Positions 2,571 to 46,101 of a stretch of 64,000 bases of DNA are shown one piece after another. Origin of the DNA: Bugula neritina (taxonomy: Eukaryota > Animalia > Bryozoa); NCBI GenBank assembly GCA_964035545.1, contig OZ037769.1:3763929-3827928 (forward strand), given 5' to 3'. The position numbers were made by a program, and so were the translations under genes. The notes under the pieces are model-generated. The model was not told the DNA's origin, ran no database searches, and was given only the letters and a program-made list of their open reading frames with translations. How positions within the stretch are numbered: the first letter of the stretch is position 1; the number at the start of each line of letters is the position of its first letter.

Positions 2571-3687
2571 TGTAAAGTTATCACATATACTCTAGAGCAT
2601 AATTATTTCAAGTTGTAAAAGCAGAATAACCGAATGAATATTCAACAGTTTATTAAGCATTCAACGTTGCGCTTAGCGCAACGTTCTACTCAAATAGATG
2701 ATCACGTCACGTGATTCTTGCCTATACACGCAATGCAACGACTGCAATAGTTGTCAATTCATTAATTAGATAACAGCACGCCCTCGCCCATTGGCTGTAG
2801 CCTTACGTCTTGGCAGCCCGGATGTTTCAGTGCAGACGTTGACCCTACAGTTAGTAGAATAGTAGCACGCTGGCAATGCAAGTTCCATCGCATAAATAAC
2901 AATAAATTTTAATGATATAATTAGCAAAATATAAATGAATTTGAATTGGAATTAACTTCAAGAGGCACAGGTTAGTTTTGTTTTTCAGTATTTGTATGAT
3001 TTGAAGCTTTCCTTAAGTATTGATTATCTATTTCAACTTAATAATAAATATTTGGTTTATTTAACATGTTTAGGAGTTTAACAAGTTTGAAATACCAGTG
3101 TGGTGGGTGCATGATGAAATTCATGGCTATGTGTTTACTTTATATTAGATTTCTCATAAAATTACAATTTCTTAAGACAGGCTCTCCAGTTATTGATCAG
3201 ATTGTCACAAGATAGAATCCTAATTTGTAGCTTAAAGTTTTACTTTTACTCATATCAGTAATTTACTGCAACTAATAATTCAAGTCAACTTTTAATACAA
3301 GTTCAATCTTTGTTTATGTTACATATGCACTAATACTTGTCTTAACTGATAATTAATTAACTTTGTCTATGGCAGTTATCATTTGTTGTCATTTTTATTA
3401 TAAACTTTAATATTTTTAGTAGACCTACAATGTCATTTCCTAGAGTCAAACTCACCCTAGCTAGCCACTAAAAGAAGGCAAGAGGTGATTAATCTAAAAT
3501 CCGCATATATGTTTGAATACTTTACAATGTCATAAATAATTTTTGTTTGTTAATTGTTTTAAAAACCTATTATAATTGTATATATTAACCTACTTTTATA
3601 GTTTCTTACGGCAGTTGGAATACGTAAAAATAAAGTTACGAAAACCAACACCAGTACAACTCATCTATAGTTAGTGGCGACGCTACA
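2571..3687 (+). repeat. 5' LTR
   Basis: TG...CA termini; no difference from 5733-6849 found by eye. Confidence 0.92.
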
Positions 3688-4325
3688 GTAAGAAACTCAA
3701 CCATCTGTGAGACAAAAGCTAAAGAATTCAATAGAGGCCTGTCCTGAGAAATTTTAGCAAACCACCAGGAAGTTTCAGCAATCAACTCCTTAGAGAGGCA
3801 GCTGAGTACCCCTGCTCCATATATCATACAGTATTAGCTGATAAGGCTAGTTGACTGTAAAGTCCAAGTGACAGTTTTAAATGAGGAATTAATTAAAAGG
3901 TCATTTTAATTGTTTTGCCCTAGCTCTTATGAAAGAGCAATTTACTATCCTAAGTTATTATTAAAATATTTGATGAGCTGATTTAAAATATTTGAATAGA
4001 GTCACTCTGAATATTGTTTGTTTTTGATAAAATAGTGTGCTACTTTTCATACCTATTGTAAGTGGGAAACTGATCAATTAACAGGGAGCTTGCAATGTCA
4101 CCATAACTAAACAAACTAGTAGGTAAACAGCACTCGCAGTGCATTGTAGTTCTGCAATTCACATATCCTTGAATTTGCCTTGTGCATAGATCACACTGTG
4201 TGCCTGTGATTTTTCCCTTCGCATTGTAGTCAGGTTTTTGTTGCAGCCTCACTAGGTACTTATTCAGTGTTTTCTATTGTTTACAGTAAAATTAGTATCT
4301 CTGTCATACTGAATTGAAAATAACC

Positions 4326-5693
4326 ATGAATAGGTTACATGCCGATCAAGATTATCTCGTACAAACAATGGAAAGACAACTTTACTTAAAGACCCATAAT
4401 GTTCATTTTGGAACAAATAAATTTAGTTCTATAAACAAAGCAGATAAATCCTCTAGGCGACTGCGACAAGCTGCTGCCAATGCTGAGGCTAAGATAATTG
4501 AGTTACAGGCTAAACTAGAAGCTGAAAAGAAAAATGAAGAGCTAGAAATCCAAGAGTAAGAACTTGCATCCAAGAAGCGGCAAGTCAGTCAAAGGAAGCT
4601 AATGCTGAAAATCGAAGCTGAGAGACAGAAATCTAAACTTCTCAACAATGAAGCAAAGAAGCGGGAAAGTGAGAACAGTCTCTTTCTGACACCCTCAAAA
4701 CAACAAACATCTCTTCAACAAGATTTCATATTTGATGAAACACTATTATACGACAACATAAATCTCAAGCCCAATTCAACTGAAGTGCCAGTGGCAGTGG
4801 CTATATCAGCTGAACAAGCATCTGAAGTTTCTCCACCACCCGAAAATAGGTTAACAAGTCATCCCAAGACATCTGCAAAAACAATAACTGAATCCATGAA
4901 AACAACTAAAACTCCTACAGCAGAACCAACAGTCTTTGATGGTGATTCTCTAAAGTATAACAAGCGAAAGCACAGTTTCAATGCTCCAATGGTGTGCAAG
5001 GCTATATGTAATGAAGAAAAACTGAGTTATTTACCCAAATACATCTCACCAGTAGTTGAGGAAACCATGTCTGTACAAACACCTCTTGACTGGAACATTG
5101 TAGGTCAAGTAAATAAGAGAAACCTAAAACATAAACCCCAAAGAACTCACTTTAAATCTAAGAACAAGTCCCCATCCTGCAAGATCATATATTCTCTTGA
5201 AAAAGACTCTGAGAACACTAAAGACACCACACAGAATACTCTCTCTCAGGGTGATAATAAATTGATGAATATCACTCATGACGGCATCAAACGAGAAAAT
5301 GGAATCTACACTATTTTTCTAACCTTGAAGCCGAAGCTGGACACATCCAATACTAAATTGATCCCACAAAAAAGGTTCCGCTTGTTAAAACAAAAATCAT
5401 CAAAGCAGCCAGAAATCATGCAAGAGTATACAGCTTTCACAAATGACGCCATACTATGTAAAGGCCACCCTGAGACAATCCCAGACGAGAAATCTAACAT
5501 CCTGCTACAGGAAACAAGCTGCAAACACCGTGTTGGTTTACGCCCGCCGAGAAAACGTTGGCGGCAGGTCCGAAAGGGTAAACTACTCTTAGCTGACGGC
5601 AGTCTAGATAAGAACGGGAAACTGAAATCTAACTTTAGCTACCTGGAGAGACCAAGTCACTCTATAGTAGTAATTCAAAGGGCGCAGTATTAG
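4326..5693 (+). pseudogene. Deleted Bel/Pao gag-pol remnant (ORFs 4314-4559 and 4602-5693 share one frame, separated by one TAA)
   Basis: Collinear fragments: coiled coil; PTAEPTVFDGDSLKY...EEKLSYLPKYI (gag DUF1759-like); VQTPLDWNIVG (post-protease motif); KRFRLLKQK...EYTAFTNDAI (pre-RT); RKRWRQV+RKGKLLLADGSLDKNGK...LERP (post-integrase DUF5641-like). No RT, RNase H or integrase core is visible. Confidence 0.75.
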
Positions 5694-5732
5694 GTTTTGA
5701 TTCGCCAATTTAGGACGAATCAAAGGGGGGAG

Positions 5733-6849
5733 TGTAAAGTTATCACATATACTCTAGAGCATAATTATTTCAAGTTGTAAAAGCAGAATAACCGAATGAA
5801 TATTCAACAGTTTATTAAGCATTCAACGTTGCGCTTAGCGCAACGTTCTACTCAAATAGATGATCACGTCACGTGATTCTTGCCTATACACGCAATGCAA
5901 CGACTGCAATAGTTGTCAATTCATTAATTAGATAACAGCACGCCCTCGCCCATTGGCTGTAGCCTTACGTCTTGGCAGCCCGGATGTTTCAGTGCAGACG
6001 TTGACCCTACAGTTAGTAGAATAGTAGCACGCTGGCAATGCAAGTTCCATCGCATAAATAACAATAAATTTTAATGATATAATTAGCAAAATATAAATGA
6101 ATTTGAATTGGAATTAACTTCAAGAGGCACAGGTTAGTTTTGTTTTTCAGTATTTGTATGATTTGAAGCTTTCCTTAAGTATTGATTATCTATTTCAACT
6201 TAATAATAAATATTTGGTTTATTTAACATGTTTAGGAGTTTAACAAGTTTGAAATACCAGTGTGGTGGGTGCATGATGAAATTCATGGCTATGTGTTTAC
6301 TTTATATTAGATTTCTCATAAAATTACAATTTCTTAAGACAGGCTCTCCAGTTATTGATCAGATTGTCACAAGATAGAATCCTAATTTGTAGCTTAAAGT
6401 TTTACTTTTACTCATATCAGTAATTTACTGCAACTAATAATTCAAGTCAACTTTTAATACAAGTTCAATCTTTGTTTATGTTACATATGCACTAATACTT
6501 GTCTTAACTGATAATTAATTAACTTTGTCTATGGCAGTTATCATTTGTTGTCATTTTTATTATAAACTTTAATATTTTTAGTAGACCTACAATGTCATTT
6601 CCTAGAGTCAAACTCACCCTAGCTAGCCACTAAAAGAAGGCAAGAGGTGATTAATCTAAAATCCGCATATATGTTTGAATACTTTACAATGTCATAAATA
6701 ATTTTTGTTTGTTAATTGTTTTAAAAACCTATTATAATTGTATATATTAACCTACTTTTATAGTTTCTTACGGCAGTTGGAATACGTAAAAATAAAGTTA
6801 CGAAAACCAACACCAGTACAACTCATCTATAGTTAGTGGCGACGCTACA
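5733..6849 (+). repeat. 3' LTR
   Basis: Follows the PPT, ends ...GACGCTACA, then TSD CTCTG. Confidence 0.92.
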
Positions 6850-7481: not shown

Positions 7482-10400
7482 ATGACTGAAACAGAAATGA
7501 ACGAATATGCAGCTATTAAAGACCAGAATAATTATCAGGGTTTATCAGCACCTCAGCCTGTGGGAAACATACCAACACATGCATTAAACCCTCAGCCTGG
7601 TCAACCCTCTCCAGGTTACCAACAGCAGTTTGTACCCCAACAAGGATATGCCCCTAATATGCAGCCTCCACCTGGATATGCCCCTCATCCACAACAGCAG
7701 CCTGGATATGCCCCTCATCTACAACAGCAGCCTGGATATGCCCCTCAGATGTACATGCCACCTGAATATGCCCAACACACATACTTCACGAAAAACACAA
7801 ATGTTCACCAACCAAATAACAACCAATTAGCTTCTATCCCTCAGCCAGTATTTGCCACTCCTAGTTCTGGAGTAGCACCTGCACAAGCACCTGCTTATAA
7901 TGGACATGGCACTGGCCAGCAGGTGGTGACACAGACGACTCAGTCTCTTCTAAATGTGAGTTTCTATATATCTATCCCATAGTTATATATGTATTTTTGT
8001 TATTAGATTTGCATATATATAATAAGACAATAATTATTATGAATATTATACAAAAAATGCAGTTATGGCTTGGAAGTTTCAATATAAGTTGATATCAAAT
8101 GTGCTCACATGCACAAATATTCTTAGTTTAATGTAAACAATGCTTTACATAATATTATTCTTACTGTATTAGGGTCTTTAATCGCCTAAAATTATTTAAC
8201 AACTTAGTTTAGACTTTAGAGTAAGTATAATAATCATATTAAAAATTACAGTATAAGTTAAATAGCATGTTTTTCTGTAGGTAACAGACACAGGTTCAAC
8301 ATGCTGGATGGTTGTTGGAATTCTGACGGCCATATTGTGCTGCCTGCCACTGGGAATTGCTGGTGCTGTCATGGCATTTTTATCTGGTGAAGATGCTAGA
8401 GGAGGAAATGCTGCTTCCTACAAGACAAAGATCTGTCAGTCTAAAGCTCTGACACTCACAGGACTAGGAATTGGGTTGGCGATAATTATAGCTGCAGTAA
8501 CTGTGGTGGGTAATTGTTGAAATACTTTTTCTAAACAAACAGTATGCATGTGATGCACTATAAAAAGTTTTACGGTATAATCAATATATTCCTAAGCAAG
8601 ATATTCAAAACTGAATCTAAAAACTTAATCAATGCCTTTAAATTGATTAAAAACTAACATAGGTAACTCTAGTACTTTTTCCAAAAAGCTAAGCTAGTTA
8701 TTTGAATTGATGACTAATTGCATGATAAGTTTATATAATAGGCTCGCTGCTAAGAAGCCAAAACATGTGTCTAAAGTTTTCAGCTGAATATAGACACGAT
8801 TGAATTAGCAAAGAAGACTGTCAAGTTTTATTTTTATAACTATAATAAATGGGTTTCAATACAGGAATAAAAAATGAATGCATTGCATTGTATACGTTCA
8901 CTTCAGTATTGTATAATCTCTATTTCTATGCTATATTGTAGTACGTATTGCATATCTGTGTTTATATATATATACATGGTATTACTCTACTGTTTTATAT
9001 CTGTGTATATAACATTAATTGCAGGTCTTATATACAAATGTCTATAGTAATAATATCTAGAATATAACGTGGGTATATTTTCATGATTGTAATGTATATG
9101 TGTTTAGATATAGGTATATAGTAGTCTACACTGCATAAATACTGTATATAATATATACTTATGTCTAAATGATCAATTTAAAAGGAAATACTATGTTAAA
9201 TTTGTTTGGTAAGCTCTCTTTATAATTCATTTTATCTAACTTATTGTATTAATTTTCAAATTTTATGGTTTTAATTTTTAGGGTTTGGTAGCAATAAACA
9301 ACGATTACATTAGTTATGATGTCATAACTCCTGAATATTATACTCAACAATGGACAAGTAAGTATTATGCTGAATAGTAGATAAATGCTCAGTCACTTAA
9401 TTATAGGTACATAGGATTGTGAAATGATTTAATTAGATGACTTTTGGTGTTTATTGATTCGCATATGATCAAAAATGAATATATAATATTATCCAATCTG
9501 AGTTATTTAATTAAATATTTTATATAAAAATAAATTTATTATCAAAAAGCAGATAAAATTTCATACAAGTAAAAGTCAAAAATTAAAATGATTATGTCAA
9601 TTGTTAACGTATAATTTTTTTATTTATCTTATAAAAATATTATATATTTCAGCATTTTTGTTTGGTTAAAAGATGAATATTTTCTTTAATCAAACAACGT
9701 AAAAGATTACAATAAGTAAAACCAAATAACATACAATACATCTTTGTCGTTACATTATAGCTGAAGCCATTTACATGGGATGCTATGAGGATGATATCAT
9801 ATTCCGAGATCTTGATGGAGATTTCTATGACTTTGGAACAGACAACTCCGTCTCAAAGTGTAGCAGTTACTGCTCTGAAAGAGGTAAAAGAAGTTGCTGT
9901 TTAGTTTTAAATTCCGACATTGTTGAATATAAGCCCTCTTCATGTGAGAAGATGAAATCTTCACTTTATGTTGCTTTTAATAATTTACTATTCTAGATAA
10001 AACTTATTCTTAATAATATGAACTAGAATAAATTTACTTCCAGTCAAAAGTAAAATAATTTTCTTTTAAAGTTACCTATTTTGTTTGACAGAAATTTTGC
10101 AAAATGCATCATCAATAAAGAAAAGTTCAAATATGTGCATAGCTACAAATTGTAGCCACAGAAACAAATTACCTTCCCTGTCATTATTCCCACAGTTATT
10201 TTTATCCTGTAATATGGCAATAGCTTCGTTAGCATATAGCAATTGTTTTGTAAACTTGTATTCATTGTCCATCAATTATAGTTGGATTAAACATTGATAA
10301 GTGTCTATAAGTTCAATACATTGTATTCTAAATTATATGTAAAAAAGTATTTTTTCAGGTTACAAATATGCAGGCCTGCAGGAAGGAAACCTGTGCTACT

Positions 10401-13400
10401 GCGGATACTTTTTTGGCTCAATTTCTCCGTTGGATCAGACTCAATGCGACTCTCGCTGCCCTGCTGATAACAGAGAATGTGGAGGGTATCTCATCAACTC
10501 TGTGTACAGAACAAACTATCTTGGTGAGTATCTTTAATATATCACTTTCTTGACTTATAATTCTTGTAGTGCTTAGTACATATGTTGGTTTGAGCTTATA
10601 GTTTTAATTCTGGTTTGTATTTGTATTTCAGTAGTATCTAGGGTAAAATAAACCTATCGGCATAAGCTAATGCTTTGAAGTGATGTGTGTCAGCTTTGTT
10701 TAGTTTCTTATGATAGGTCACATGACAGGTTTTGATGTAGCTGAGTAAATTACCAATCTTATAGATTATTATAAACTAGTACTTGTAACATATATGTACA
10801 CATTCTAGTTTAGTATTACTTTTGATTTGTATTTTAAACCCAATCCTAATTATTACCAAGAAATCTGATCATACTAATTGTTATTGGTCAGCACACAATA
10901 AAGGTTGGTTACAGAGCTGTTTAAGTTGTTTAATAATTCCTTTTTTCAAATTTATTTGCTTGATTTTTTTCCAAATACAAGTATATGCTTTATTAAATTC
11001 AATAAACTACATATACACATAAATGTAAGCTAAAATATTTTTAACTATTTTAGCAGAAAACTTCCACTAACGGTGCATAGCGTACTTACAAAAAAATTAA
11101 ATATGATTGCCAGAGATCTGTCAAAATAGTTTCTGTCATTTGGGCATAATTTTCTGTCATTTGGTTATAATTTTTACTATATCATGCACAATGATGTCTC
11201 CAGAAATTTTGTGCCAACTTAAAATAAAAAAGCATTTGTTTTCCAGCAGGACTGTCAAACTGCTTAGCGCAATGACTAAATATTTATATATCACTACGAG
11301 AACTATACAGCTTTCTTGTAAACAGCACTTCAGCATTGAAAACTAAGCCAAAGATTATACATTAATTAGCAATTTATACACTAATATTATGTAATTGCAC
11401 AAATTTATTTGCAGGTTGCTTTAAGGACATCAGTTTCGATGTATCTTTAGATTCCCAATACTATTTAGACTACTTTGACGCTGTACCACAGGTCTGCACA
11501 TCAAAGTGTGGTGATAAAGGTAAGTGAAATGCATTATTATTTTCTTTTGGTATACAAAACTATACGTGAAACTCGCAATAGTTATCATCAGTTTCAGATT
11601 TGGAGCTCAACAAATATTGACAACAATTATAAGAAATGACTCTAAATCGAAATGGAAATTAATTGCAAAGACTAATTGATGGAATACTCAAACGACTGAG
11701 TAGTGATCAGATAGTTTAGTATTATGCCACATAGTAATGCAGAAACGCTAAAGTATACTTTTTCATTGCACATATTATAATGCTATGTTTGAAAACCTGC
11801 AAAGGTGGGCATCTGCTTAAAAAGTCTTAAAATAAAAATCACGGCAAAGTTTCAAATTTTCAACACCTTCTCAATGAAATGTGTTTTAGGATTAAAGTTT
11901 GCGGCACTAAGTGGTAGGTACTGCTACTGTAGCAATGACCCAAACAGATATGGTGAAGTTTCCTATGAAGATTGTGATGTGAAATGTAGTTCCAACAGTG
12001 AACTTCTGTGTGGTGGTAGTAGCGAGAATTCAGTGTTCAAAACTGATGCTAATAGTAAGCCCCTACCTATATAATATTCAGGAAATATTGTAGAAAGCTC
12101 AGTCTACTTTTAATAGCATATACGATTACATCACACAGCAAAATTTCGATAATATGCCTATATAATAAAACATACACCAATATATCAAATGAAAATAACA
12201 ATATATTTGCTTAAAATCATTTTGCTGATGTGTACAGTTTATTTATAATTGCATTATTATAAAACTATGACGCTGGCCACAGTTTTGATAAAAGTAATTA
12301 TTGCTGAATTGAAATATTTAGTTGTTGCAATTATGTTTATTGAGATTTACTTCCTTCAAAACTGACCTAAGATAATCAACTTTGCAAGATAAAGAGCCAT
12401 TGCCGTAAACAAAAGTAAAAATGTCCATCCAGGATTACAGATAATGGAAAACCAGCTACGCATACCGGGCATGTTTTACTTCGGAGGCTGAAGTTTTTAA
12501 GTACCCTTAGAGTACTATAGTTTTTCAAATTAACCAAGTACACTTTAGGCTTTTGAATAAAGTTAAAAATAATTAAAAGCTTCAATATACTAAATAATTA
12601 TGAAATTCTTTTACCTTATAGCTCTAATCAAACAAACAAAACTAAAACTCTCACATGTATAAACTATTGCTTTAGGTGATAAAACATATCACTATCTTGG
12701 CTGCTACAAAGATTCTACTTTTACAGATGAACTACCAGAGTATATATACTCTTTGGACAACAGCCCCAGTTGGTGCGCATCTACATGTTCAACTAGAGGT
12801 AAGTAAGTCGTGCTACGAGTCATACTTTGGTTGCTAAAAATACTTCGAGAGTTGAAGAGAGTTTTTATTAAAACAAAATAGCTGCTGGTATTTACAATTA
12901 ACAATTTACAGTTGATAGGTAACTATTAAGCTTGACCATATAGAGTAGTTATATTAACCTATGTCTGATAGTCAGGTTATAGGATGCCATCTTCAACTGT
13001 ATAATTCTAAATTAGTTGCTGGAAAAATAAACATCATGCACTTTGATAAAAACATGAATTTAAACTAAAGCTAAATCACAAAATTAAACGTTTAGTTTTT
13101 TCAGTGTGCACAAAAGCATGGTTAAATAGTAGTATATATTAGTAGCTAGTTTATTGCAAAATTTTAGTTGTCATGGTTTTTAGTTGAATTAGTAAAAAGT
13201 TAGCTCAATATATTAATTTAATGAGTTTATTATTACCAGGTTACAGATATGCTGGACTACAATCAGGGACTGAGTGTTACTGTGGACAGTCTTACGGTTC
13301 GTATGGTGAGTCATATGATTGTTACTCAAATTGTCCAGTTGGAAATGAATTCTGTGGAGGACCATCATCCAACTCTATCTACAAAACAGACTACTTCGGT

Positions 13401-14360
13401 AAGAGAACATTTAAAGTTATTCATCTTAGTTTTATTCAACAATTTAAAATTTGAATTAAAGCCATATTTTCAAGCTGAAATTTGTTAGGGCGCTTTCAAA
13501 TTTTCTCAGTGTAGCCCACTGGGCTCATCGATGAATCCGAAAGCGCCCTTAATTGTGAAAATTTGAAAAGTCTCAACAGAGAAAGCAATTTGAGTTTTAA
13601 CATAATTTAATGCTAATTATTTGCTCTAATTTATAAAAAAAATTCAAGTATATATTAGAATAGGTTAAATTGAATTTCAACTGTTTTTAGGCTGTTTTAA
13701 AGATGATTTCTCAATTGAGGCCATGAACGTCTCTGTCTTCATGTCAAATTATGAGTTGTCTCCTACCGAATGTAAGAGGAGATGCAGAGATCAAGGTGAG
13801 AGGATATTACATCATGTTATTCATCATGTGCTTAAAGCATTACTATAATATTTTCGATTACATCAAAAAGTATAACACCAAAAGCTAATAAGGTCTATTT
13901 TAATTCAATACTTATCAACTATAAGTTTGGCCGTAAACGTTTTGCAGTTATATTTTCTGTAACAAGTAAAATTTATGAATTGCTGTTAAAGAAATATACT
14001 TGAACTGCTGGAATAGGTTCAAATAGTCAGCAACGTGTTTTGCATATAGAGCAAGATGTAATTTATAAGCTCAAATATTTACATTAAATCACACTTTTGA
14101 ACAAAGTATTAAAGGCAAGATTTATTACTATAAACAGAATTTATATTATTATAAATAATTATTTTACATTTTTGGCACACTTTTTTGTAGGTTACTTGTT
14201 TGCTGGAATTGGACAACCAAATGGATGTCGTTGCAGTCACGATTTCAACAAATACTATCAGGTTTCGGATTCGGAGTGTGATGAATTGTGTACTTCAGAC
14301 TACGAGAGTACATGTGGTGGTTACAGCACACTGGCAGTGTTCGAGACAGGCTTGAGTTAG
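7482..14360 (+). CDS. Gene A: Pro/Gln-rich + CD225/dispanin + 4x WSC membrane protein, ~629 aa; exons 7482-7955, 8281-8505, 9282-9357, 9761-9883, 10359-10523, 11415-11519, 11890-12054, 12676-12798, 13240-13398, 13691-13795, 14191-14360
   Basis: All introns are GT-AG with compatible phases (0, 0, then all 1); spliced length is 1890 nt with no internal stop. Exon 2 (WMVVGILTAILCCLPLGIAGAVMAFLS...GN...SKALTLTGLGIG) fits the CD225 pattern. Exon pairs give YxGCY/F...C...C..GYxYAGLQ..CYCG...C...C...CGG...NSVY four times. Genes B and C have the same structure. Confidence 0.85.
13488..13548. mobile_element. Tiny PIF/Harbinger-like MITE in gene A intron 9
   Basis: TIRs GGGCGCTTTC / GAAAGCGCCC flanked by TTA on both sides; GC-rich patch not seen in the homologous introns of B and C. 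Confidence 0.5.
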
Positions 14361-20442: not shown

Positions 20443-22088
20443 ATGAAGGTCTTGTATTTGCAAACACTTTGCATTTTTGCTTGCATTGCTTCTATCAAAA
20501 CTGAACGAGGTATGTTCAAGAATTTACTATCTTAATCTTCAATCCTTTTTACAAACTTTGACAGCTAACTTGTTAACAAATTATTTAAAATCATTGCCTT
20601 ATTTTGCTATATTTGCTAAATTAAATCATTTGTCTATTCCAGCATATTTCATGCTTAAAGTTACAACTTTGATTACATGTAAACTAAGTTCTACAAGCTT
20701 ATACTTTCATTTTGACAATACTAGTGTTGTTATAATATATTTAATTGTTAATTGTTATAATAATATCACGCTATAAGTGTTTTAAAGAAAAAGCTTGGAA
20801 ACCACAGCTAAAAGATTTAAGAGTGATAATATTTCAGATTAGTGTTGCACAAAATTATAGAAATTTACACGTTTCCAGTTGAAAGCTAATGCTATACATA
20901 TGTATAGTATTGTTTTAAGGTTGGCAAACTGAAATTCAAAAGATTTTTCTGTAACACCATTATAGCAATTTGGCATTTGTTAAACAAATCCGAAGTTGTC
21001 AGCAGTATTACACTTGTTTATGTAAGCAGGCTTGCATAGAGTTTAATGAAATTAATTTAAGACTGAAAACTGCTTATTTTACTTTAAATATAAATGCAAG
21101 GAGGGCAGAGGGGAAAAAATAAACACATTTATCTAGCTTGATTCCTTTCCTAAGTTTTAGCATATGATACAAACTTGATAGGAAAGAGGCTATACAATAT
21201 ATAGAAGCTTTTTACCAGTTTTGTCGTGAGAAGACAATTCCCTACTTATTTTGAAAAGCTCTTATATATACCACATTCTCAGTGTATACATATGAAACAC
21301 ATTATCTAAAAAGAGCAACTTTTTAACTTGCGATTTCATCAGCAAAAGTTGTCACTTGTTTTGAATTTTCTAAAATGTGAATTATAGTGATTGGATACAG
21401 AGGGTGTTATAGAGATGAAAGCAACAGGGATTTACCTTATAAAACTGATTTTACAGACAACTCTGTAAGGAAATGTATTAGCCACTGTCAACAAAATGGT
21501 AAACAATTGCTTTTAATACTATGATATTTCTTACTCTTGAAGTGTCACTAATCTTAGTTTCTACATATGGTGCCTAATACTGCTTATATATATAGTACAA
21601 CTGAGAAAACCTATGGCAGACCTCAACACTGTACAAAACTGTATTAGCTATACTGTCAAACACAAGGTAAACAGCTATTACAGTAGTGTGGCCTTGCTCA
21701 CTCTTGAAGCATCACTAGGATTAGTCTTTATAATAACCTGTTGATTATATTATATAACTGAGAGAGAATATTTATGGCTTACTTCATATAGTATTCATTT
21801 AGGAAGAAAAATTACTTCATAGGCATTTTAAATTATCAGATCTGAAGCTGAATTTAAGTGACAATTTTTTTTAATTTTGTAGGCTATGACTATGCAGGTA
21901 TGCAAAGCTCTAATCAATGTTTTTGTGGAAACCGATATGGCAGATATGGAAGGCTTGATGAGGCAGAGTGCAATAGATCATGCAGGGGTGATTATAGTAG
22001 TGAGATATGTGGGGGTCATTATGCTAATTCTGTGTACGTTGTGCCTAAATGTTCATGCATTGGGTCTCAAAATATTAATGAAAATTAA
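20443..22088 (+). CDS. S1: secreted single-WSC protein, 127 aa; exons 20443-20509, 21388-21498, 21883-22088
   Basis: Signal-like [22 protein letters not shown], then [17 protein letters not shown]...[25 protein letters not shown]...[30 protein letters not shown]; phase-1 GT-AG introns. Confidence 0.88.
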
Positions 22089-23521
22089 TGATCGTTGAAT
22101 ATTTGATTTTGTATAAACACTGCAACAATACCTGATCACAGTTTAAGTAAAATAGTTCATTCGAGAAAAGATATAATGTTTTTATTTTCTAGTTGTACTG
22201 CAATTGTCACTTTTGTTATATTTAGAAACTTGAATAACCAAGAGTTTTAACTAAATTTGCACAATATTTTTATCATTTTACTAGTAGGTTATCTGACTGA
22301 GACCTATAAGGTAGTTGTGTAGCAGTGTTAGCATGCAGGTGGAGTGCATATTATAGGCTTAATTGATATTTTAAATTCTTGTCTTGTTCCAGTAACAGTA
22401 ATTGTATTGCCACTTGGGGCATCTGTTTTTATGATATGCTCGTAAAAATTGAAATAAATTATTTTGGATAAAAGTTTAAAGAAGGGTGAAGTTTAGAATG
22501 TATGAGCATAATAAAACTACCAGCACATATGCATATTTAAAATAAAAGTGTTGAAAGTGAAAATAGTTCTTAAAAGTTTTTGCAGTAATGCAAGAATATT
22601 CCATTAGTTTTGTTGCAAGGAGGGATCTCAAAAACCAGATATTTTTAAACTTTTATTCGATAAAGAAGTACAGTTAATAATTTGAGCAGATTAAACCTGG
22701 TATTCTTATCAGCACAAAGCAATAACTCGTTACTTAGAACACTCCTATTTTTAGTAACAGTGCACGAACAACCAATTTCTTTGATGAGCTTTAATTGCAG
22801 GTAGGTTAATATGGTTTGCTTTTTTGATCAACTACTTCTGTTGTATTTAATGCAGGTTTTTTAACTAATAAATTTAATTTTTTTGATCAATGAATGCTAT
22901 AAAATAAAATTTGTACCCAAAAATAAAAATAAAATATGACGAATGCTTAAATCTTGCTAAAAATGCATCAAAGTGAGCACACATATACTTATGCAAAACT
23001 TATTAACGGTACCATTACATAGCTACTATAGCTTCATGAATTTTGTTTGTTTAGCAAATATATGGAATTTGCAGTTTAATTTAACCTAACATTCAAACAA
23101 CATCTCTATAATTGACTTTTGCTGAAGCAAATCAATATTTCCGACTAAAAAGGCTATAATACAATTCACAGAAGTTATAATATATTAAAAATCTAATACT
23201 AGGATTTGGCAAAGAATCAATTAATAGACTAAAAGAGTTATATGCTTTGAGACTCCCTGAAGTTATGAATTTATACCCATACCTTTGCTATAGCAGTTTA
23301 TTATACCCTTTCACTCAATAACCTCATCTATATGTTCACATGATATTGCAATCTAACCAACCTAGTAACAGAAATGAAAGATATTTGTTAACTATTCATG
23401 AATTCATAAATTAGTCATCACCTTAATCTTTAAAGCAATGTCTTCTATGAACCTGACACTGAATGAAACTCTTCTGTTGGAATCAGCTGCTAACACACAG
23501 AAATAGAACAAGATACCTAAA

Positions 23522-25028
23522 ATGAAGGTCTTGTATTTGCAAACACTTTGCATTCTTGCTTGCATTGCTTCTATCAAAACTGAACGAGGTATGTGTAAAT
23601 ACTGATTTTTAAAACCTAGACTGCATATATGAGAGTCATAAGTTCAAATATTACAAACTTTGTTTGACAGCTAATTTACTAACAACCTATTTAGGGCAAC
23701 TGGGTCAATTTTTTTTATTTGTTAAAATAAATTAGTTTAGTAACTAGCTAAGTAACTTACTAAAAACGTATTAGAGCAGTTGCATCATTTTGCTATTTGC
23801 TAAAATGAGTTTATCTATAATTCTAGCATATTTCTTGCTGCAAAATTACAAATTAGATTATGTGTAAACTTAGTTCAACAACCATATCTTTTATTTAAAT
23901 TATATGAGTGATTATGATGATGATTCAATTCATAGATGATTTATATTAGAAGCATTCTAAAGAAGACAGGAAATTGCAACTAAATTTTTTTAGAACTGCA
24001 TGCTTGAATATATTTCAGGTTTGATGAATTGTTACACGTTGAGATATATGTTTCTAGTTGGTGACGAAAACTGCTTTTATATGCGCTATCAATTGAGTTT
24101 GACAAACGAAAAACAAAAATGTTTTTCCTAATAATGTTTTAGGGATAGCATAATATTATGTTAAGCAAACCAAATTATCAGCACTTTATAACTTGCTTAT
24201 GTACTGTACATGCAGGCTTATATACAGTGTAATATAGTGAATTGAGGATTGAATTTTTTATTTTAAACACAAATGCAAGTAGAGAAAAGTGAAAATAATA
24301 AGAAGCACATTTATCTAGTTTAATTATTGTCTTAGTTTCTAGCACATGATGAATCACTTGATATGAAAGAGGCTGCAATAGGAGCGCTTCACCAGTTTTG
24401 TTATAAGAAGACAACTCCCAATTTCATTTTGCACATTGTCAGCAATTTATCAAAGTATACATGAAACTTATTGCTTAAAATGCACAATATATTGTAGTTT
24501 GTGATTTCATTCGCAAGATATATTATGTTACCGATGTTGATTTGTAACGTAAATTACAGTGATTGGATACAGAGGGTGTTATAGAGATAACAGAAGCAAC
24601 AGGGATTTACCTTATTTTACTGCTTTTGAAGACAACTCTGTAAAGAAATGTATTAGCCACTGTCAAAAACAAGGTACAAAAGCCTTAAAAATAGTTTCTA
24701 TTGCATATAACTGCTTATATCGGGAGTGGGGAAGTCTGCAATTTACTTAACGCAAAATTACAAAGAAAAACTGATTTCATAGACACTTTAAACTTTCAGA
24801 TATGAAGCTAGATTTAAGTGACAGTTATAGTTTTATTTTGTAGGCTATGACTATGCAGGTATGCAATACTCTTCACAATGCTTTTGTGGAAACGGATATG
24901 GTAGATATGGAAGGCTTGAGGAAACAAGTTGCAATAAACCATGCAACGGTAATAGTGATGAAATGTGTGGCGGCTATTTAGCTATTTCAGTGTACGTTGT
25001 ACCCAAATGCTCATGCAACATACCTTAA
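23522..25028 (+). CDS. S2: secreted single-WSC protein, 121 aa; exons 23522-23588, 24560-24673, 24844-25028
   Basis: Paralog of S1 with an intact frame; ends ...[20 protein letters not shown]. Confidence 0.88.
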
Positions 25029-26904: not shown

Positions 26905-28077
26905 ATGAAGGTCTTGTATTTGCAAACACTTTGCATTCTTGCTTGCATTGCTTCTATCAAAACTGAACGAGGTATGTCTAAATATTCATTTTCAAAGTTT
27001 TATATGAGTGTTATAAAAGTGGAAATGCATGGAAATTACAGCTAAAAAGTTCAAAATTGTTTGATATACTGTTTCCACGTTGTAGTTGAAGTTGATATTT
27101 GAGTCTAAAAAACCCGAAAAAAAATATTTTGCTCAAAACTGTTTTAGCAATGGCATATGTTAAGCACACAATGTCAACAGCTGAAGTATATTACATTTAT
27201 TTATGTATGCAGGCTTTCAATTTGATAAAAATGAATTTAAAACTGAATTGCTCATTTTATCTTAAATTTAAATACAAGCAGGACCGAGGCAAAAATCTCA
27301 TTTATCTAGTTTAATTCCTGTCTAAGGTTTCAGCATATGGTGAAACACTTAATAGGAAAGAAGCTGCAATATATGAGCCCTGCACCAGTTGTGTTATAAG
27401 AAGACAACTCCCAATTTCATTAAAAACTTATCATCACATTCTCAAAGTATATACAATATACATGAAACACATTGCCTAAGGTGGAAATATATTGTAATTT
27501 GTGATTCGTTCTATTATAATAGTAAAAAATTGTCACTGCCATTAAAATTTCTAAAATGTAAATTACAGTGATTGGATACAGAGGGTGTTATAGAGATGAA
27601 GGCAACAGGGATCTGCCTCATCGGGCCTCTTATCACGGAGATGGTTCTGTAAAGAACTGTATTGACTATTGTCAGCAAAAAGGTAAACAAGCTATCAGTG
27701 TGAGCTTTTTCACCCTTAAAGTGTGACTAATTTTAGTTTTTATAACTTAATATTTTTATAATACTGCGGCTGAGAAAATCTATGGTTTATATAGTATCAA
27801 ATTATAGCAAGAAAAAACAATTTTATTATAGACAGTTTAATTTATCAGGTCTAAAGCTAGATTTAGGAGACAATTTTAATTTAATTTTGTAGGTTTTGAC
27901 TATGCAGGATTGCAGCATTCTGGAGAATGCTTTTGTGGAAACCGATATGGCAGATATGGAAGGCTTGATGAGGCAGAGTGCGATAGATCATGCAGGGGTG
28001 ATAGTAGTGAGATATGTGGGGGTCATTATGCTAATTCTGTGTACGTTGTGCCTAAATGTTCATGCAACATATCTTAA
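26905..28077 (+). CDS. S3: secreted single-WSC protein, 121 aa; exons 26905-26971, 27569-27682, 27893-28077
   Basis: Intact frame: ...RDLPHRASYHGDGSVKNCIDYC...AGLQHSGECFCG...[28 protein letters not shown]. Confidence 0.88.
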
Positions 28078-29276: not shown

Positions 29277-30736
29277 ATGAAGGTCTTGTATTTGCAAACA
29301 CTTTGCATTCTTGCTTGCATTGCTTCTATTAAAACTGAACGAGGTATGTTCAAATATTCATTTTTAAAACCTATATAAAGTAGATTGCTAATTTGAGAGC
29401 CATCAGTTCAAATTTCACAAATTTTGTTTGACAGCTAGCTTACTAACAACCTATCTAGGACAGCTGGCTTATTTTGCTATTAATTGTTAAAATAAGTTTG
29501 TCTATTCTAACATGTTTCTTGATGCAAACTTACTGCTTTGATTATGTGTAACTTAGTTCAACAATTATAGCATATCTTTTATTTAAATTATATTAGTGAT
29601 TACGATGATGATTCAATCCATCAATGATTTATATTGGAAGCATTTTAAAGAAAAAAGGAAATTGCAGCTCTAAAATTTTTAGAATTGCTTGAAAATGTTC
29701 TAGGTTTGATAAGTTTTTATACATTGAGATATATATTTTTCTAGTTGATAACGAAAACTGCTTTTATATGCACTATCTTGAGTTTGACAAACGAAAAACG
29801 AAAATGTTTTTCCTAATAACGTTTTAGGGATAACATAATATTATGTTAGGCAGAAAATGTTATCAGCGGTATTATATAACTTGCTGGTGTATTGTGCAGG
29901 CTCACGTACAGTGTAATGAAGTGAATTTAAGACTGAATTTTTATTTTAAATACAAATGCAAGCTGGAAAAAATTGAAAATAATAAGAAGCACATTTATCT
30001 AGTTTGATCTCTGCCTTAGGTTTTAGCATATGATAAAACACTTGATATGGAAGAGTCTGCTATAGGAGCTCTTCACTAGTTTTTTTATAAGAAGACAACT
30101 TCCAATTTTATTTAGAACATTGTCAACAGATTATCAAAGTATACATGAAACTAATTGCTTATAGAATGCACAATATATTGTAGTTTGTGATTTCATTCGC
30201 AAGATAATGATTTCTAATGTAAATTACAGTGATTGGATACAGAGGGTGTTATAGAGATGAAAGCAGCAACAGGGATTTACCTTATAGAACTGACTTTAAA
30301 GACAACTCTGTAAAGAAATGTATTAGCCATTGTCAAGAACAAGGTAAACAAGCTATTAGTGTGACTTTTCTCACTCTTAAAGTGTGATCACTAATGTTAG
30401 TTTCTAGTGCCTAATACTGTTCATAGTACAACGGAGAGATAATATCTGGCTTACTTATACAATCATGAAGAAAAAATGATTTCATAGACACTTTAAATTG
30501 TCAGATCTGAAGCTAGGTTATTATAGGGACAATTCTAATTTAATTTTGTAGGCTATGACTATGCAGGTATGCAATACTCTTACGAATGTCGTTGTGGAAA
30601 CCGATATGGTAGATATGGAAGGCTTGAGGAAACAAGTTGCAATAGGTCATGCAACGGCAATAGTAATGAAATGTGTGGCGGCTCACTGGCTAATTCAGTG
30701 TACGTTGTACCCAAATGCTCATGCAACATATCCTAA
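29277..30736 (+). CDS. S4: secreted single-WSC protein, 121 aa; exons 29277-29343, 30230-30343, 30552-30736
   Basis: Intact frame: ...AGMQYSYECRCG...[20 protein letters not shown]. Confidence 0.88.
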
Positions 30737-32270: not shown

Positions 32271-34408
32271 ATGGTGAGTATCACTCAGTCTAAATATTTC
32301 TGTTGTGATGGTCAAACTGTACACATTACTGTTCCAACAGTAATAGTGACTATAATAGTATTATTACTGTATTAGTTTTAGTATTAGTTTTAGTATATTA
32401 CTAAATAATAGTTTAGATGACAGTAGTGGAAATTAATAGTCACTATAATAATTACTATGCCAATAGTAATAGTTACTTCTATTAGTACTATATAGTATTA
32501 GTGTTAGTGTTAGTACTATAATATTGCTAATGCAATTTAGACATTTCAGTATATTTTTGTAATCTTCCATTTTCTAATTAATTATTCACGAATTTGTTTA
32601 CTGGGAGGTGATGAAAAAAAAGGTTATAGTAAGATTTAGTTTGATGGAATGTAACCATGATTGAATAAGAGCCTCTTTTATATTAGATTACAATTGAATA
32701 ACAACTTATATGCTTCTAGAGTAATTAATAATAATATAATATAACATATATTATATATATATAGGGTGGGATTGGACAAATTCTCCCGATAGTAATGATG
32801 TTAGGACTATCAGCACGTCAAAGAAAAATTAATGAGTAAGTATTTTGAGTTTGTCTTATATTTTTGTGAGGTGCAGTACTTTTTCATTTATGTTAACTTA
32901 ATTAAAAATTAGAAATACATGTATCGATAATCTTAATATACAGTGACGCTCAAGGAAGTAGTGGAAATAGCCGTAGTCGAAGGAGTAATGGCAGAAGAAA
33001 CTGTGATGACTTAAACTCTTCACAGCAGTCTCGATCTACATCTAGTGGTACACCTACTTCAAGGACAGCTAATAAAAAGGAAAAGTAAGTTGCTAACTTA
33101 GCGTTTCAAATTTTTATAGCTGAATATTTTGAGATCGTATCAAACATTAGTTAATGCATGCTTTAATTGTGAACTGGTGATAAAGGCTCCATAACTTATG
33201 AACAATGTCTACGTGTTATAAATTGTGACATTATAATATATTTTGAACCAGTTATTAAAATGTTTGCAGACAATGTACCAGTACAACAGGCAATGTGCCT
33301 TCTCATTCATTTGAAAAATGTTCAGCACCTGCACAAAATGATGGAGAACAAAGGACTGGTGTGAATATCATGTTTGGATCTTTTGCGGAAAGCTCTAATT
33401 CTCGTAGCGGTGATCAAGGAGAAGCTACCAGATCTATCAACAGAAGAAACATAGGGTATTGCGATAGTGTCTTAAATCATAGATAATAGAAAAGTGTAAC
33501 AGCATGGTTTTATGATGTTACTTGTACATGGTTTTCAGTAAGTTAATTAGTGAACAAACACAATATTCAAATCATGCATGTATTTTAGTAACTGTTGAGT
33601 TGTTGTTTAACTGGTCTCAAATTTTTTGAAACATTTGTAAGATCCACAAAATTAAATGTATAACCTGTTTTTCTATAGGTTACCACCAGTACAGCCAAAC
33701 TTCAGAGTTTCTTCCAGCTCTTCTGGGCGTGATGAGACTACCAGGAGTTTTCCTAACATGTTTGTTCCACAGTTTGGGCGACTAGCAGCCGATATTCACA
33801 AAGACCAAAGTATAAATTTCACAACCACTCCTCAATTCAAAGCCTACACCCCACCTGAAAACACTGCTACACAACTACCTTGTAGATCTCAGTCAGATGG
33901 CCAACTTCATGTACGCCCTGTCTTCAATGAAATACGAAATGACATCACATTCTGTTCAATGCCAGATATATTCTACTTAAGTTTTTACAAACAGTTCATA
34001 GACTCAAACAGATCAGATTGTAACACATTCACTCCTGGATCAATGCCAGACATATCCGATTTCAGCCGCTATCAGAAAAAGATAAAAAACAACAACACTA
34101 TTCCATCTTCCTCAGCAACAAACATCACTTCTTTTACCACTAGTCCAATACCAGAAATTTCTGCTTCCATCATGCCTAACCAAAGAACTACAGAGCCCGC
34201 CAGATCAAACTTATCCGCAACTGATGTAACCAGCAATGACCTCACTGCAGCTTCAGCAACTTATCCACTAGCATCTGGAAACTCTGCCAACCCTCCACCT
34301 GCTCCAATTTCACTTTCAGCTCTTTTCAGTAGCTTCTGTCGTCTCACCAACACTATTGTTACCTGGTCATGTCGTTGGCTCCGCCTCATGTTCCACTGGC
34401 TTCTCTAA
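32271..34408 (+). CDS. Orphan gene X1: Ser/Thr-rich low-complexity protein, ~376 aa; exons 32271-32273 (ATG), 32765-32835, 32944-33084, 33270-33455, 33679-34408
   Basis: GT-AG sites and phases (0,2,2,2) are conserved in copy X2. Three exon-2 differences from X2 are synonymous in this frame (CCG/CCA, GCA/GCT, AGA/AGG). Starts MGGIGQILPIVMMLGLSARQRK; no recognisable domain. Confidence 0.6.
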
Positions 34409-35807
34409 GTACTAACATTTTCAAAAATTCTTCTCTTCTTTAGAAGTGTATGAGCACGTCAATATTTTCATTACTGTTCAATTATTTTGGTTCTAAGTGC
34501 TTACGTGCGCACTGCTATACTTTTTTAGAAATATTGTTTAGAACACTACTGTTTTATTTTTAGTGTAAGTCATTCTAACTAAATTTTTTCTTCAAAATAT
34601 TTTAATCCATTCATTCTTAGTTCTTATTACATTCTTCAGAGTGGTCAAACATCAAATATTGATTGCTATTTTTTATTCTTCTCACAACAAGATGGTCAGA
34701 TATAGCATCAATTTCTTTAACTAAACATAGCTATATGATCTGTCAAAATACTGACAGCCCTGCCATATTATGAAAAATATTTTTTGTTAAAAAATTATTT
34801 TATCAGCAACAGGATTTCAGGTTGGTTAATCCTGATATTCCTTTCATTCTTTTTCTTAAAAGTTTTTGTGAGCTTATTTGTTATCAGCTTCTTAAATTTT
34901 AAAAATAAACTGTTGTAAATGCATGATTTGATTATAATACATGATGTAACATGTTATACATTTATTATCAAAATACTTTTAGTTCACATGAAACAAAAGC
35001 TATTTAATTGGAAGCTTATCATAGCTTTGCTTCTAGAAGCTTACCAGTGAATATTTACACAACAAAGTAAAAACAAGAAAGAAGCAGCATTCATTTGAAA
35101 TAAAATAAAGTATAGTTTGCATGTAATCCGTGTGGGCATCTCCACGGATTTATTCACTTGCATGGAAACGCAATGAGTATGGCAAAAAGTGAGATCAACT
35201 TCTATTTTTGTCAGAGCATAGTTTTACAGTATCTAATTTTCAGACATAATCTTATATGTTCCAATCCAAGATTATACATCACATCAAAAATATATGTTGT
35301 GTCTGCCCCAGACTCAACATTTTTATTATGTAATAAGTACCAACATCCTCAGCATGATAATCTAATCTAGAACCAGTTTTATATTTGTTGTAGACCAACA
35401 TATTACAGCAAACGCATCAGCTTACATCGCTGATGCCAAAAAACATAAAGCTTATGTATTCTACAATTTACATTTGTAACAAATGGATAGCTTACTTCTA
35501 AACTTTCAGATAGTTTATTATAGAAGGCTGTCTCTAATCAATGCTGTTTCAAATGTCTCAAACGGAGAATGATAAATTACATGGGTGATGAAATATTAAA
35601 TGCGTGTTTTCAATGAAGCCATAGCTATACGAATGAATGCTTTCAGTCTATTTTTAGGTTTTTCACACTCCAAATGTTTTAAGTTGATAGGGCTATAGAT
35701 TTACATTGGACTGGGCTGTTATACATTAAAAATCACCTCATTTTTTTCAAAGAATTTTCTTTGCTTAACCTACCACAACGTTTATTTGAACTGCTTATAA
35801 GCTATAC

Positions 35808-36328: not shown

Positions 36329-38736
36329 CTAACTCAAGCCTGTCTCAAACACTGCCAGTGTGCTGTAACCACCACATGTACTCTCGTAGTCTGAAGTACA
36401 CAATTCATCACACTCAGAATCTGATACTTGATAGTATCTGTTAAAATCGTGACTGCAATAACATCCATTTGGTTGTCCAATTCCAGCAAATAGGTAGCCT
36501 ACAATAATAAATGTGATTTATAGTTATCAGTCAATAAAATAGTGCAAATATATTATCAGGCTTTGAGTTAAATTTAATATTATTTATTTTATTCTTTTTG
36601 TGAGTTACAATTCATATTCATTTGACATTAAAGAGGCATATAATCAACCTCATATGTTCTCATGTTGTGCCAAGTTGCTAAGCTTTAATTTATTTATATA
36701 AGACAATAAATGCAATACATATAACACCAGATATAACAAATTGCTTGTTTAAAAGCAAATAAATTTTGCAAAACAGTGAATAATTGTGCTTTATAAGTGA
36801 TATTCTTTTTTAAAATTGTTGCAAAAACTAAATCTTATTCTGACTAATTTATCATAAATTCAGCAGATTGTTAGATTGTCATATTCTCTCACCTTCATCT
36901 TTACATTCACTCTTACACAGTGTAGGAGTCAAGTCATAATCTGAGATGTAAATAGAGACATTCATGGCTCTGTTTGAAAAATAATCTTGATAGCAGCCTA
37001 AAAATACAGTTGGAATCTAAGTTTAGTCATCAGCTTACACTTTATAAGCAGTATGTCAAAATATTTATTTGTTTTTATGAAAGTGTTTAAATCATTACCA
37101 TTAAAAACATAATATTATACTTGGTGTTCGATTGTAAGCTGAAAATTTGATATATGGCATGGCTTTAAGAATAATCGTGAATGTTTTCTCACCCAAATAG
37201 TCTGTTTTGTAGATAGAGTTGGATAAAAATCCTCCACAGTTCTCATTCCCAACTGGACAATCAAGGTTACAAAAATACGATTCACCATATGAACCGTAAG
37301 ACTGTCCACAGTGACATTCAGTCTCTGATTGTAGTCCAGCATACCTGTAACCTAACAATTGTAAACTTATTAAATTATTCCTGCACAAAAGTTTTGTGTA
37401 ATGTTTTGGCTCAATTTGATTAAAAAAACAAAACTGAGCAGGCATAGTTGTTAGTTTTTACACACTAAAGTAGAGCCCGAAAATTTATATGCCGCTTTTA
37501 TAATTTCAATCTGGCCTATTTGCTACTTTTAGAAATCTTCAGTTATAGCTAAAAAAAAGAGTACTTCATGAATAATCAGCAACTGTTTGGTCAACTAGAG
37601 AGCTGTATTTCACACAAGGCAATAGTAGACTAAAAACACAGCTGTAATTATAATATGTTTAGAAATTAAAAGTCTTGGAGGTATACTCACACTGACTAAA
37701 AATAAAAATTAACAATTTTTTTTTGATTTGTCAGATTCAAATTAGTTTAGTTACAATGGGTTGATATTTCACATTACTTTTACTTTTACGTTATGTAATC
37801 ATGCCTAAAATTTAACTTTTCAATTGTTTCCAACTCCCAGCTTTTCTAGCAATTATATTGAGACTCGTATAGCAATGTTTTGCCTACCTTTGTTTGAACA
37901 CGTAGAAACACACTGGCTGGGGTTGTTGTCCCAAAAGTATGTTAACACTGGTAGGTCATTTGTCCAAAGAGAATCTTGGTAGCAGCCAAGATAGTGATAC
38001 TTCTGGTCTTCTACAGCATTGTTTTATTATACATAAAAGGTTTCACACAAATATATGTTCATCAAAATGTGTATATTATTTTTCAAACCTTGATAGTACA
38101 AAATTAAAACTACCATTTTTGAAGTAAAACTAGAAGCAAAAGAAAGTTATATTTATTTAATAATCACTGGCAAATTAGTAAAACGAAATTAAAAAATATC
38201 AATTTTAATTGCATTTTGATTTTAATAATCAGCTTAAAACATTCTCAATAAATCAGACCTAATAATAGTATATTGAAAGTCTTTAAACTTAGACTTAAAA
38301 TTATTTAAACCAGAGCCTATAATTGAGCTCATTCATTTGAATATTATTATAAATTGACACTTTTTATTCACCGCTATACTACAGCACCTATACAAGTATA
38401 GCTTTAGATTAAATAGATAAAAGCAACCTCAGGTTTTCAAATGATAGTAGAAAACTGTTGGTTTATAAATATACATTAGTATATTTTGATTTTACTTCAA
38501 CTGCATTCAGGTAATGTTTAAAAATAGAATTTGACATCTGCATAGATCATCAAATGTCTTTTTTAAACAACATTTAAAAGTTATAGAGTTAAAAGATAGG
38601 ATATTTTATGCTTTCAATTTAATATGCTTTAGTAAAACTATAAGTTTTACTATTGCGAAGGTGTGGGCCATGGTACTCTGTTCTGTGCTGATGAGGGGAC
38701 AAATCCCGAAACAGCTGCTGTCCACAGATTGAGATA

Positions 38737-38796
<60 letters not shown>

Positions 38797-45037: not shown

Positions 45038-46101
45038 CTCTCTACAACAGGTGACAGTAGTGTAGAGACTAGACACTATCTAACAGGTGACAGTAGTGTA
45101 CAGACTAGACATTCTATAACAACAGGTGACAGTAGTGTAGAGACTAGACACTATCTAACAGGTGACAGTGGTGTACAGACTAGACACTCTATAACAACAG
45201 GTGACAGTGGTGTCTAGACTAGACACTATCTAACAGGTGACAGTGGTGTACAGACTAGACACTCTATAACAACAGGTGACAGTAGTGTAGAGACTAGACA
45301 CTATCTAACAGGTGACAGTGGTGTACAGACTAGACACTCTATAACAACAGGTGACAGTGGTGTCTAGACTAGACACTATCTAACAGGTGACAGTGGTGTA
45401 TAGACTAGACACTCTACAACAGGTGACAGTGGTGTACAGACTAGACACTCTATAACAACAGGTGACAGTGGTGTCTAGACTAGACACTATCTAACAGGTG
45501 ACAGTGGTGTATAGACTAGACACTCTACAACAGGTGACAGTGGTGTAGAGATTAGACACTCTACAACATGTGACAGTAGTGTAGAGACTAGACACTATCT
45601 AACAGGTGACAGTGGTGTACAGACTAGACACTCTACAACAGGTGACAGTGGTGTAGAGATTAGACACTATCTAACAGGTGACAGTGGTGTATAGACTAGA
45701 CACTATCTAACAGGTGACAGTGGTGTACAGACTAGACACTCTATAACAACAGGTGACAGTGGTGTCTAGACTAGACACTATCTAACAGGTGACAGTGGTG
45801 TATAGACTAGACACTCTACAACAGGTGACAGTGGTGTAGAGATTAGACACTCTACAACATGTGACAGTAGTGTAGAGACTAGACACTATCTAACAGGTGA
45901 CAGTGGTGTACAGACTAGACACTCTATAACAACAGGTGACAGTGGCGTATAGACTAGACACTATCTAACAGGTGACAGTGGTGTACAGACTAGACACTCT
46001 ATAACAACAGGTGACAGTGGTGTATAGACTAGACACTATCTAACAGGTGACAGTGGTGTATAGACTAGACACTATCTAACAGGTGACAGTGGTGTATAGA
46101 C
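45038..46101. repeat. 36/39-bp minisatellite, roughly 28-29 units
   Basis: Unit AACAGGTGACAGTGGTGTAYAGACTAGACACT(ATCT|CTAC|CTATAAC), with a 75-bp dimer higher-order pattern. Confidence 0.95.

Follow-up and report, generated by a model that had tools for sequence, protein, structure and literature searches.

Does a locus on contig C5 (OZ037769.1) of the bryozoan Bugula neritina encode membrane proteins that join a CD225/dispanin module to an array of WSC domains, and what would such proteins do? The stretch of DNA analysed here (the window) spans 64,000 nucleotides (nt), positions 3763929-3827928 of C5, in an assembly of 216 Mb and 321 contigs; the published B. neritina draft genome has 214 Mb (PMC7576161). 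An earlier note, made from the letters of the window alone, had proposed such a fusion for three genes, referred to as A, B and C. We find the fusion to be real and, for one paralogue, transcribed, and to belong to a family of some 22 CD225 genes, which lie in two clusters on C5 and most of which carry 1-4 or more WSC domains. As to function, we give a probability of roughly 0.5 to a family of type II capture or uptake receptors of the Bugula lineage, which would have arisen by exon shuffling and would bind an external ligand through the WSC array.

Gene A, the first CD225-WSC gene of the window, comprises 11 coding exons between 7482 and 14360 on the forward strand and encodes 629 amino acids (aa) without internal stop; every one of its introns is GT-AG, with phases 0, 0 and thereafter 1. 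Its parts and those of genes B and C are, in window coordinates (TM, transmembrane; evidence for WSC domains in brackets):

7482-7955, + strand: gene A exon 1, encoding the 158-aa N-terminus, which is cytosolic and rich in Pro/Gln/Tyr, with two PPxY motifs and without signal peptide
8281-8505, + strand: gene A exon 2, CD225/dispanin module with intramembrane helix carrying Cys-Cys, basic loop and most of the TM helix
9282-9357, + strand: gene A exon 3, end of the TM helix and Tyr/Asp linker, phase 0-to-1 adapter
9761-10523, + strand: gene A WSC1, exons 9761-9883 and 10359-10523 (cysteine/CGG pattern, Pfam)
11415-12054, + strand: gene A WSC2, exons 11415-11519 and 11890-12054 (cysteine/CGG pattern, profile scan)
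12676-13398, + strand: gene A WSC3, exons 12676-12798 and 13240-13398 (cysteine/CGG pattern, Pfam)
13691-14360, + strand: gene A WSC4 including the stop, exons 13691-13795 and 14191-14360 (cysteine/CGG pattern)
36329-43208, - strand: gene B, 11-exon plan as gene A, 620 aa, open frame
42435-42214, - strand: gene B CD225 exon; linker 41816-41744; exon-1 donor at 42759 as best guess
49438-55730, - strand: gene C, 11-exon plan as gene A, 699 aa, open frame
54718-54494, - strand: gene C CD225 exon; linker 54141-54093

The proposed order of a Pro/Gln exon, a CD225 exon, a linker exon and eight WSC half-exons splicing in frame is borne out by the open models of all three genes, and linker exon 3 has a length of 1 mod 3 in each (76, 73 and 49 nt in A, B and C). 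The joined, spliced models were used for frames, motifs, local self-matches and the ratio of nonsynonymous to synonymous substitution rates (dN/dS); database searches and fold predictions were run on single exons or on natural database paralogues (P0015, P0154). Orthologous DNA in the public B. neritina draft is only 80-84% identical over long intron-bearing stretches, and NCBI protein models of the species are 77-100% identical per exon to window paralogues; this divergence indicates that the window comes from B. neritina or from a sibling within its species complex. An independent run (X1) also covers the window stretch, with one contig bridging the end of exon 2 and exon 3 of gene A; its coding indels are each of 3 nt or sum to 3 nt, and include one in-frame 3-nt allele in gene A exon 3. 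X1 was ruled out as RNA and is DNA, its introns being evenly covered and free of splice joints.

Evidence for a transcribed join was obtained from a profile search of 1.84 billion representatives, which returned P0015, a 358-aa protein with CD225 and two WSC domains on a 1314-nt Logan contig (L041) of run SRR4020085. L041 aligns end to end, with 88.6% identity, to seven exons of the paralogue at C5:3613766-3618145, is devoid of the six GT-AG introns, and joins CD225, linker and WSC exons by way of the phase-0 donor and the linker exon that had been predicted beforehand; in the genomic copy, the first WSC is one base shorter than in the cDNA (a broken allele or an assembly error). Two neighbouring runs of SRR4020085 look like DNA, and no citation of SRR4020085 was found in the searchable papers. 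L041 supports a spliced, fused mRNA, because cDNA and a processed copy alike require one, and the fusion put forward for the window is upheld by this contig of a paralogue. For A, B and C themselves, it is very improbable that the join is a modelling artefact, in which a short CD225-only protein (donor 4 nt further downstream, stop in exon 3) lies beside a separate WSC gene. All three genes do carry a GT 4 nt downstream that leads to a stop 9-10 codons into exon 3, and no RNA run covering them was found; but this donor scores 1.7-4.3 against 10.0 (with a matrix trained partly on WSC exons of the same genes), no conserved start or signal-peptide exon precedes WSC1, the exon-3 indels preserve the fused frame, and the fused form is present in the spliced contig of a paralogue. 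The CD225-only form may occur in A, B and C as a minor isoform.

To determine the extent of the family, profiles built from window exons were run over C5:3.594-3.857 Mb. This main cluster contains 19 CD225 exons, 16 of them followed by 1-4 WSC domains on the same strand and three apparently truncated. The best donor behind the CD225 exon is of phase 0 in all 19 genes, the linker exons that could be picked are phase 0-to-1, and the same order of exons repeats about 19 times within 220 kb; repetition and uniform donor phase together show that the pattern is not due to chance. A second cluster (C5:243-275 kb) holds three further CD225 exons, likewise followed by WSC exons. Two of its genes are seen on a public B. 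neritina contig, where the first has four WSCs and the second at least three. The three copies counted in the earlier note have to be corrected accordingly to about 22 CD225 genes.

The CD225 exon of gene A matches Pfam family PF04505 with an E-value of 3e-5, though with 24.5 bits it stays under the gathering cut-off of 27.1; the paralogous CD225 exons that were aligned all match (18/18, E<0.1, best E 5.6e-10), several of them above the cut-off, and P0154, P0004 and P0167 reach 36.2, 37.5 and 29.2 bits. An ESM Atlas search with the CD225 exon yielded CD225 clusters only, and the assignment to CD225 stands. The paralogue profile has its best match in the PDB in PRRT1 (9zks_M, E 1.2e-5). According to hydropathy, the module consists of two hydrophobic segments with a basic loop between them, which were modelled as helices by AlphaFold2 (AF2) in paralogues. 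Of the two palmitoylatable cysteines conserved in CD225/dispanins (PMC11798926), gene A has both as Cys-Cys, B and C keep one, and some paralogues have none.

With the alignment register set through PRRT1, the position of IFITM3 R85 (the R-SNARE-like Arg) is taken by Gly in all three genes; two genomic paralogues have Arg there and seven have Lys, and about half of the paralogues have Arg or Lys in the R-layer. The GxxxG motif (IFITM3 G91-G95) reads GxxxS in A and GxxxA in B and C, is strict in one genomic paralogue, and has the Gly equivalent to G91 in 21/22 rows. These residues bear on the idea that the family regulates membrane fusion in the manner of IFITM or PRRT2 (antiviral restriction or SNARE control), with the WSCs aiming at particular cargo. 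The conserved CD225 fold, the retained G91 equivalent and the basic R-layer residue in half of the paralogues are in its favour; A, B and C, however, have Gly at R85 and Ser or Ala at G95, both of which are required for IFITM3 activity (PMC11730294, PMC7665892), and the nearest solved relative is PRRT1. We regard this role as improbable, and the suggestion of an IFITM-like module in the earlier note is weakened by these substitutions, by the proximity to PRRT1 and by the single Cys in B and C.

The WSC half-exons match Pfam PF01822, and all 12 domains of A, B and C have 8 Cys and the CGG motif, each being split over two exons, which confirms the domain identity first proposed. By sequence, the closest solved WSC is that of Kremen1 (E 2.4e-9). 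Each domain of A, B and C has 12-18 aromatic residues, a number compatible with glucan binding. Its net charge is -3 to -12; the secreted WSC proteins nearby range from 0 to +2, and unrelated WSC domains from +1 to -8. In the fungal lectin SiWsc3, three tandem WSCs form a site that binds beta-1,3-glucan (PMC9024836). In an AF2 model of the natural paralogue P0154 (residues 50-335, pLDDT 82.9), three CD225 helices are joined by a flexible linker to two WSC folds, which match Kremen1 (E 4e-8, root-mean-square deviation 1.2-1.7 Å) and yeast Wsc1; single-sequence folding was poor except for the CD225 helices. WSC domains are broadly expanded in this genome (at least 149 matches), with two other large WSC exon arrays at C3:15.15-15.90 Mb and C4:23.06-23.12 Mb that have no CD225 match nearby.

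The proteins of genes A, B and C lack a signal peptide and contain just two hydrophobic segments; 3-4 Lys/Arg precede the TM helix and none follow it (a positive-inside pattern), and hydropathy over 19 aa does not exceed -0.3 in exon 1 of gene A. About 370-390 aa follow the TM helix, versus a median tail of 9 aa in the best 150 of 1286 CD225 matches. Dispanins have type II topology (PMC11798926) with a very short lumenal C-terminus (PMC7665892). These features strongly favour a type II single-pass protein with its N-terminus inside and the WSCs outside or in the endosome lumen. The prediction, with two hydrophobic segments, positive-inside charges and the disulfide domains C-terminal, agrees with the orientation without signal peptide assumed in the earlier note. 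The cytosolic tails of A, B and C contain 2, 3 and 5 PPxY motifs, in excess of shuffled sequences (2 vs 0.29 for exon 1 of gene A, P=0.03; the excess in B and C stems partly from tandem repeats), and show no enrichment of YxxPhi motifs.

PPxY motifs recruit WW-domain ubiquitin ligases. In the reading that we prefer, a capture or uptake receptor, the TM helix of CD225 would act as signal-anchor and display 1-4 or more acidic, disulfide-bonded WSC domains of the PAN/apple fold at the surface or in the endosome lumen, where the array would bind an external ligand multivalently; microbial or algal polysaccharide would be the likeliest single class. The palmitoylatable CD225 hairpin and the PPxY tail might steer membrane sorting and ubiquitin-dependent uptake, in a receptor that would have no enzymatic signalling domain. 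Glycan binding by the array is plausible; the trafficking role and the ligand class are tentative parts of this reading. Several points weigh against this reading: L041 derives from the most divergent paralogue, and the library type of SRR4020085 is unconfirmed; no RNA run over A, B or C was found; several paralogues look truncated or broken; dN/dS of the domains gave no domain-wide positive selection; and the Kremen WSC is cited for protein-protein contacts, single WSCs having no obvious glycan pocket (PMC9024836).

This last point also supports a tentative, on the whole rather unlikely alternative, in which the array binds proteins, either as a Kremen-like co-receptor or in adhesion, self/non-self recognition or symbiont contact of the colony. 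Kremen1 is the closest solved WSC in sequence and fold, and the cluster is multi-copy and allelically variable, with exon identities in a patchwork; but there is neither a Kringle or CUB domain nor a signalling tail, and the WSCs evolve under purifying selection (dN/dS of WSC exons 0.33-0.43, intervals <0.6). A further proposal, doubtful in our view, has the genes encode bryozoan pattern- or symbiont-recognition receptors, whose diversified WSC lectin arrays would capture microbes or their glycans while CD225 actively steers the bound cargo through endosomal fusion; if true, this would be the first case of a dispanin with a ligand-binding ectodomain of its own.

The exoskeleton of Bugula is calcified, and the acidic charge of the WSCs, set against the neutral to slightly basic secreted neighbours, would suit a structural anchor that tethers the epithelium to cuticle polysaccharide or calcified wall, or that binds calcium. 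However, rapid birth-and-death, broken copies and gene-conversion-like patchwork suit recognition families better, the PPxY repeats suggest turnover, and Watersipora is also calcified, yet no CD225-WSC fusion was found there in these searches. We hold this explanation to be quite unlikely.

The family can be compared with several known systems. IFITM3 shares the CD225 fold and an N-terminal PPxY, linked in IFITM3 to NEDD4, and differs in that A, B and C are without equivalents of R85 and G95, show no enrichment of YxxPhi and carry a large ectodomain. WSCD1/WSCD2 and invertebrate xylosyltransferases (seen as Atlas rows) exemplify WSC domains in animals and, as Golgi type II proteins, are a precedent for a signal-anchor ahead of WSCs; they combine a simple anchor with a catalytic domain, in contrast to the CD225 hairpin, long Pro/Gln tail and lack of an enzyme in the Bugula family. 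Kremen1/2 likewise are single-pass membrane proteins with a WSC domain, the closest in sequence and fold, but are of type I and combine a signal peptide, a Kringle, a single WSC and a CUB domain, whereas the Bugula family is predicted to be of type II with WSC domains only and a CD225 anchor, and Pfam finds only CD225 and WSC on natural paralogues, without Kringle or CUB. PRRT1/SynDIG4 and PRRT2 share with the family a cytosolic N-terminus that is long and Pro-rich, an intramembrane helix (with the full Cys pair in gene A), a basic loop, a single TM and the predicted type II topology; their lumenal tail is very short (PMC7665892), whereas in A, B and C some 370 aa comprising four folded domains follow, and the R-SNARE Arg and the second Gly are lost. 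SiWsc3 and yeast Wsc1 resemble the array in their 8-Cys WSCs with CGG, in tandem, their many aromatics and, for Wsc1, the fold match, but SiWsc3 is a secreted wall protein and Wsc1 is of type I with a Ser/Thr stalk (PMC9024836).

Among the best 150 of 1286 CD225 matches, WSC occurs in Bugula proteins only, and neither the homologue searches (word- and length-limited, hence of limited sensitivity) nor the Atlas searches gave CD225 with WSC outside Bugula. Two candidates did not qualify: P0005, considered as a protein of a second species, is an orthologue of C5:260020, and P0092 of Mytilus galloprovincialis (VDH99158.1) has no Pfam WSC match and a type I-like C-terminal TM helix, and was not counted. 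VDH99158.1 consists of two CD225 modules followed by a long Cys-rich region and the C-terminal TM helix, and probably represents merged genes. No searchable paper mentions CD225 or dispanin together with WSC, or bryozoa together with a WSC domain, consistent with the initial remark that no such protein had been described. The automatic B. neritina models KAF6022027.1, KAF6029935.1 and KAF6041684.1 already carry CD225 and WSC; the name KREMEN1 given to KAF6029935.1 is a misannotation. The architecture is present in NCBI/UniProt but undescribed, and is a lineage-specific new domain fusion.

CD225, described so far in small modulators with almost no lumenal part, here anchors a large folded ectodomain and has been amplified about twenty-fold in one lineage. 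B. neritina hosts a bryostatin-producing symbiont, and the family is a candidate for receptors that handle microbes, food particles or symbionts in an animal whose immune repertoire is barely described. It also offers a clean case of exon shuffling via a phase 0-to-1 adapter exon. The weight of these points is limited by the narrow distribution found.

In the CD225 tree, 20/22 WSC-fused rows fall into one clade (support 97/90), and the approximately unbiased (AU) test (p 0.56) does not reject that all WSC-fused CD225 exons go back to one origin. The nearest CD225 clade (support 93/68) comprises short-tailed dispanins of Watersipora (W. subatra XP_067934123.1 and kin) and of contig C4. Like the fused genes, these carry an intron behind the TM helix; in the two Watersipora genes for which its phase was scored, it is of phase 0. 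Their tail exon is likewise rich in Tyr/Asp, but the tail is about 20-120 aa long and contains no WSC domain. The C4 group consists of seven short-tailed CD225 genes at C4:17284410-17308519 (L013-L019) that group with Watersipora and likely retain the ancestral anchor form. Phase-1 introns border the WSC modules, both in the fused genes and in the five secreted single-WSC genes of the cluster. We infer with moderate confidence that the ancestor was a bryozoan short-tailed, PRRT1-like dispanin gene with a Pro-rich exon, a CD225 exon and a short lumenal tail exon, that a phase-1 donor arose in this tail exon, that WSC modules of phase 1-1 were captured, and that the fused gene then expanded to about 22 copies. 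Synonymous divergence (dS) is 0.07-0.12 in the CD225 exon versus 0.26-0.50 in the WSC exons, and the exon identities between A, B and C form a patchwork; together, these suggest that gene conversion homogenises the CD225 anchor.

Further pieces of the family in the window are:

1-2064, + strand: 3' end of a fourth CD225-4xWSC paralogue, whose 5' part lies upstream of the window; its WSC3 contains an in-frame TAA (about 273-275)
57124-57495, - strand: orphan Pro/Gln exon 1, a copy that is not followed by a CD225 exon
59108-59745, - strand: extra pair of WSC exons, lying between the orphan exon 1 and the fifth of the secreted genes
20443-22090, 23522-25028, 26905-28074 and 29277-30733, + strand, and 63720-62627, - strand: five secreted single-WSC genes

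The secreted genes each consist of a signal-peptide exon and two WSC half-exons and encode neutral to basic proteins of about 120-127 aa with 10 Cys; within the genome, their signal exon is present in this cluster only. They may be soluble counterparts to the membrane-bound proteins.

About 630 bp upstream of the gene A ATG lies a recent insertion of the long-terminal-repeat type (2571-6849), with two identical 1117-bp repeats (TG...CA), a 5-bp target duplication (CTCTG) and a polypurine tract before the 3' repeat; it contains an internal open frame of 377 aa (4560-5690) without Pfam match, and no pol was seen. An inverted 1.7-kb repeat (85%) occupies 32706-34416 and 47779-46114, with fragments at 17.4-18.8 kb; its two open frames (250 and 237 aa, rich in Ser/Thr/Pro) have no convincing Pfam match, and it is probably a mobile element. 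A minisatellite array of about 1 kb (45036-46101) lies between genes B and C.

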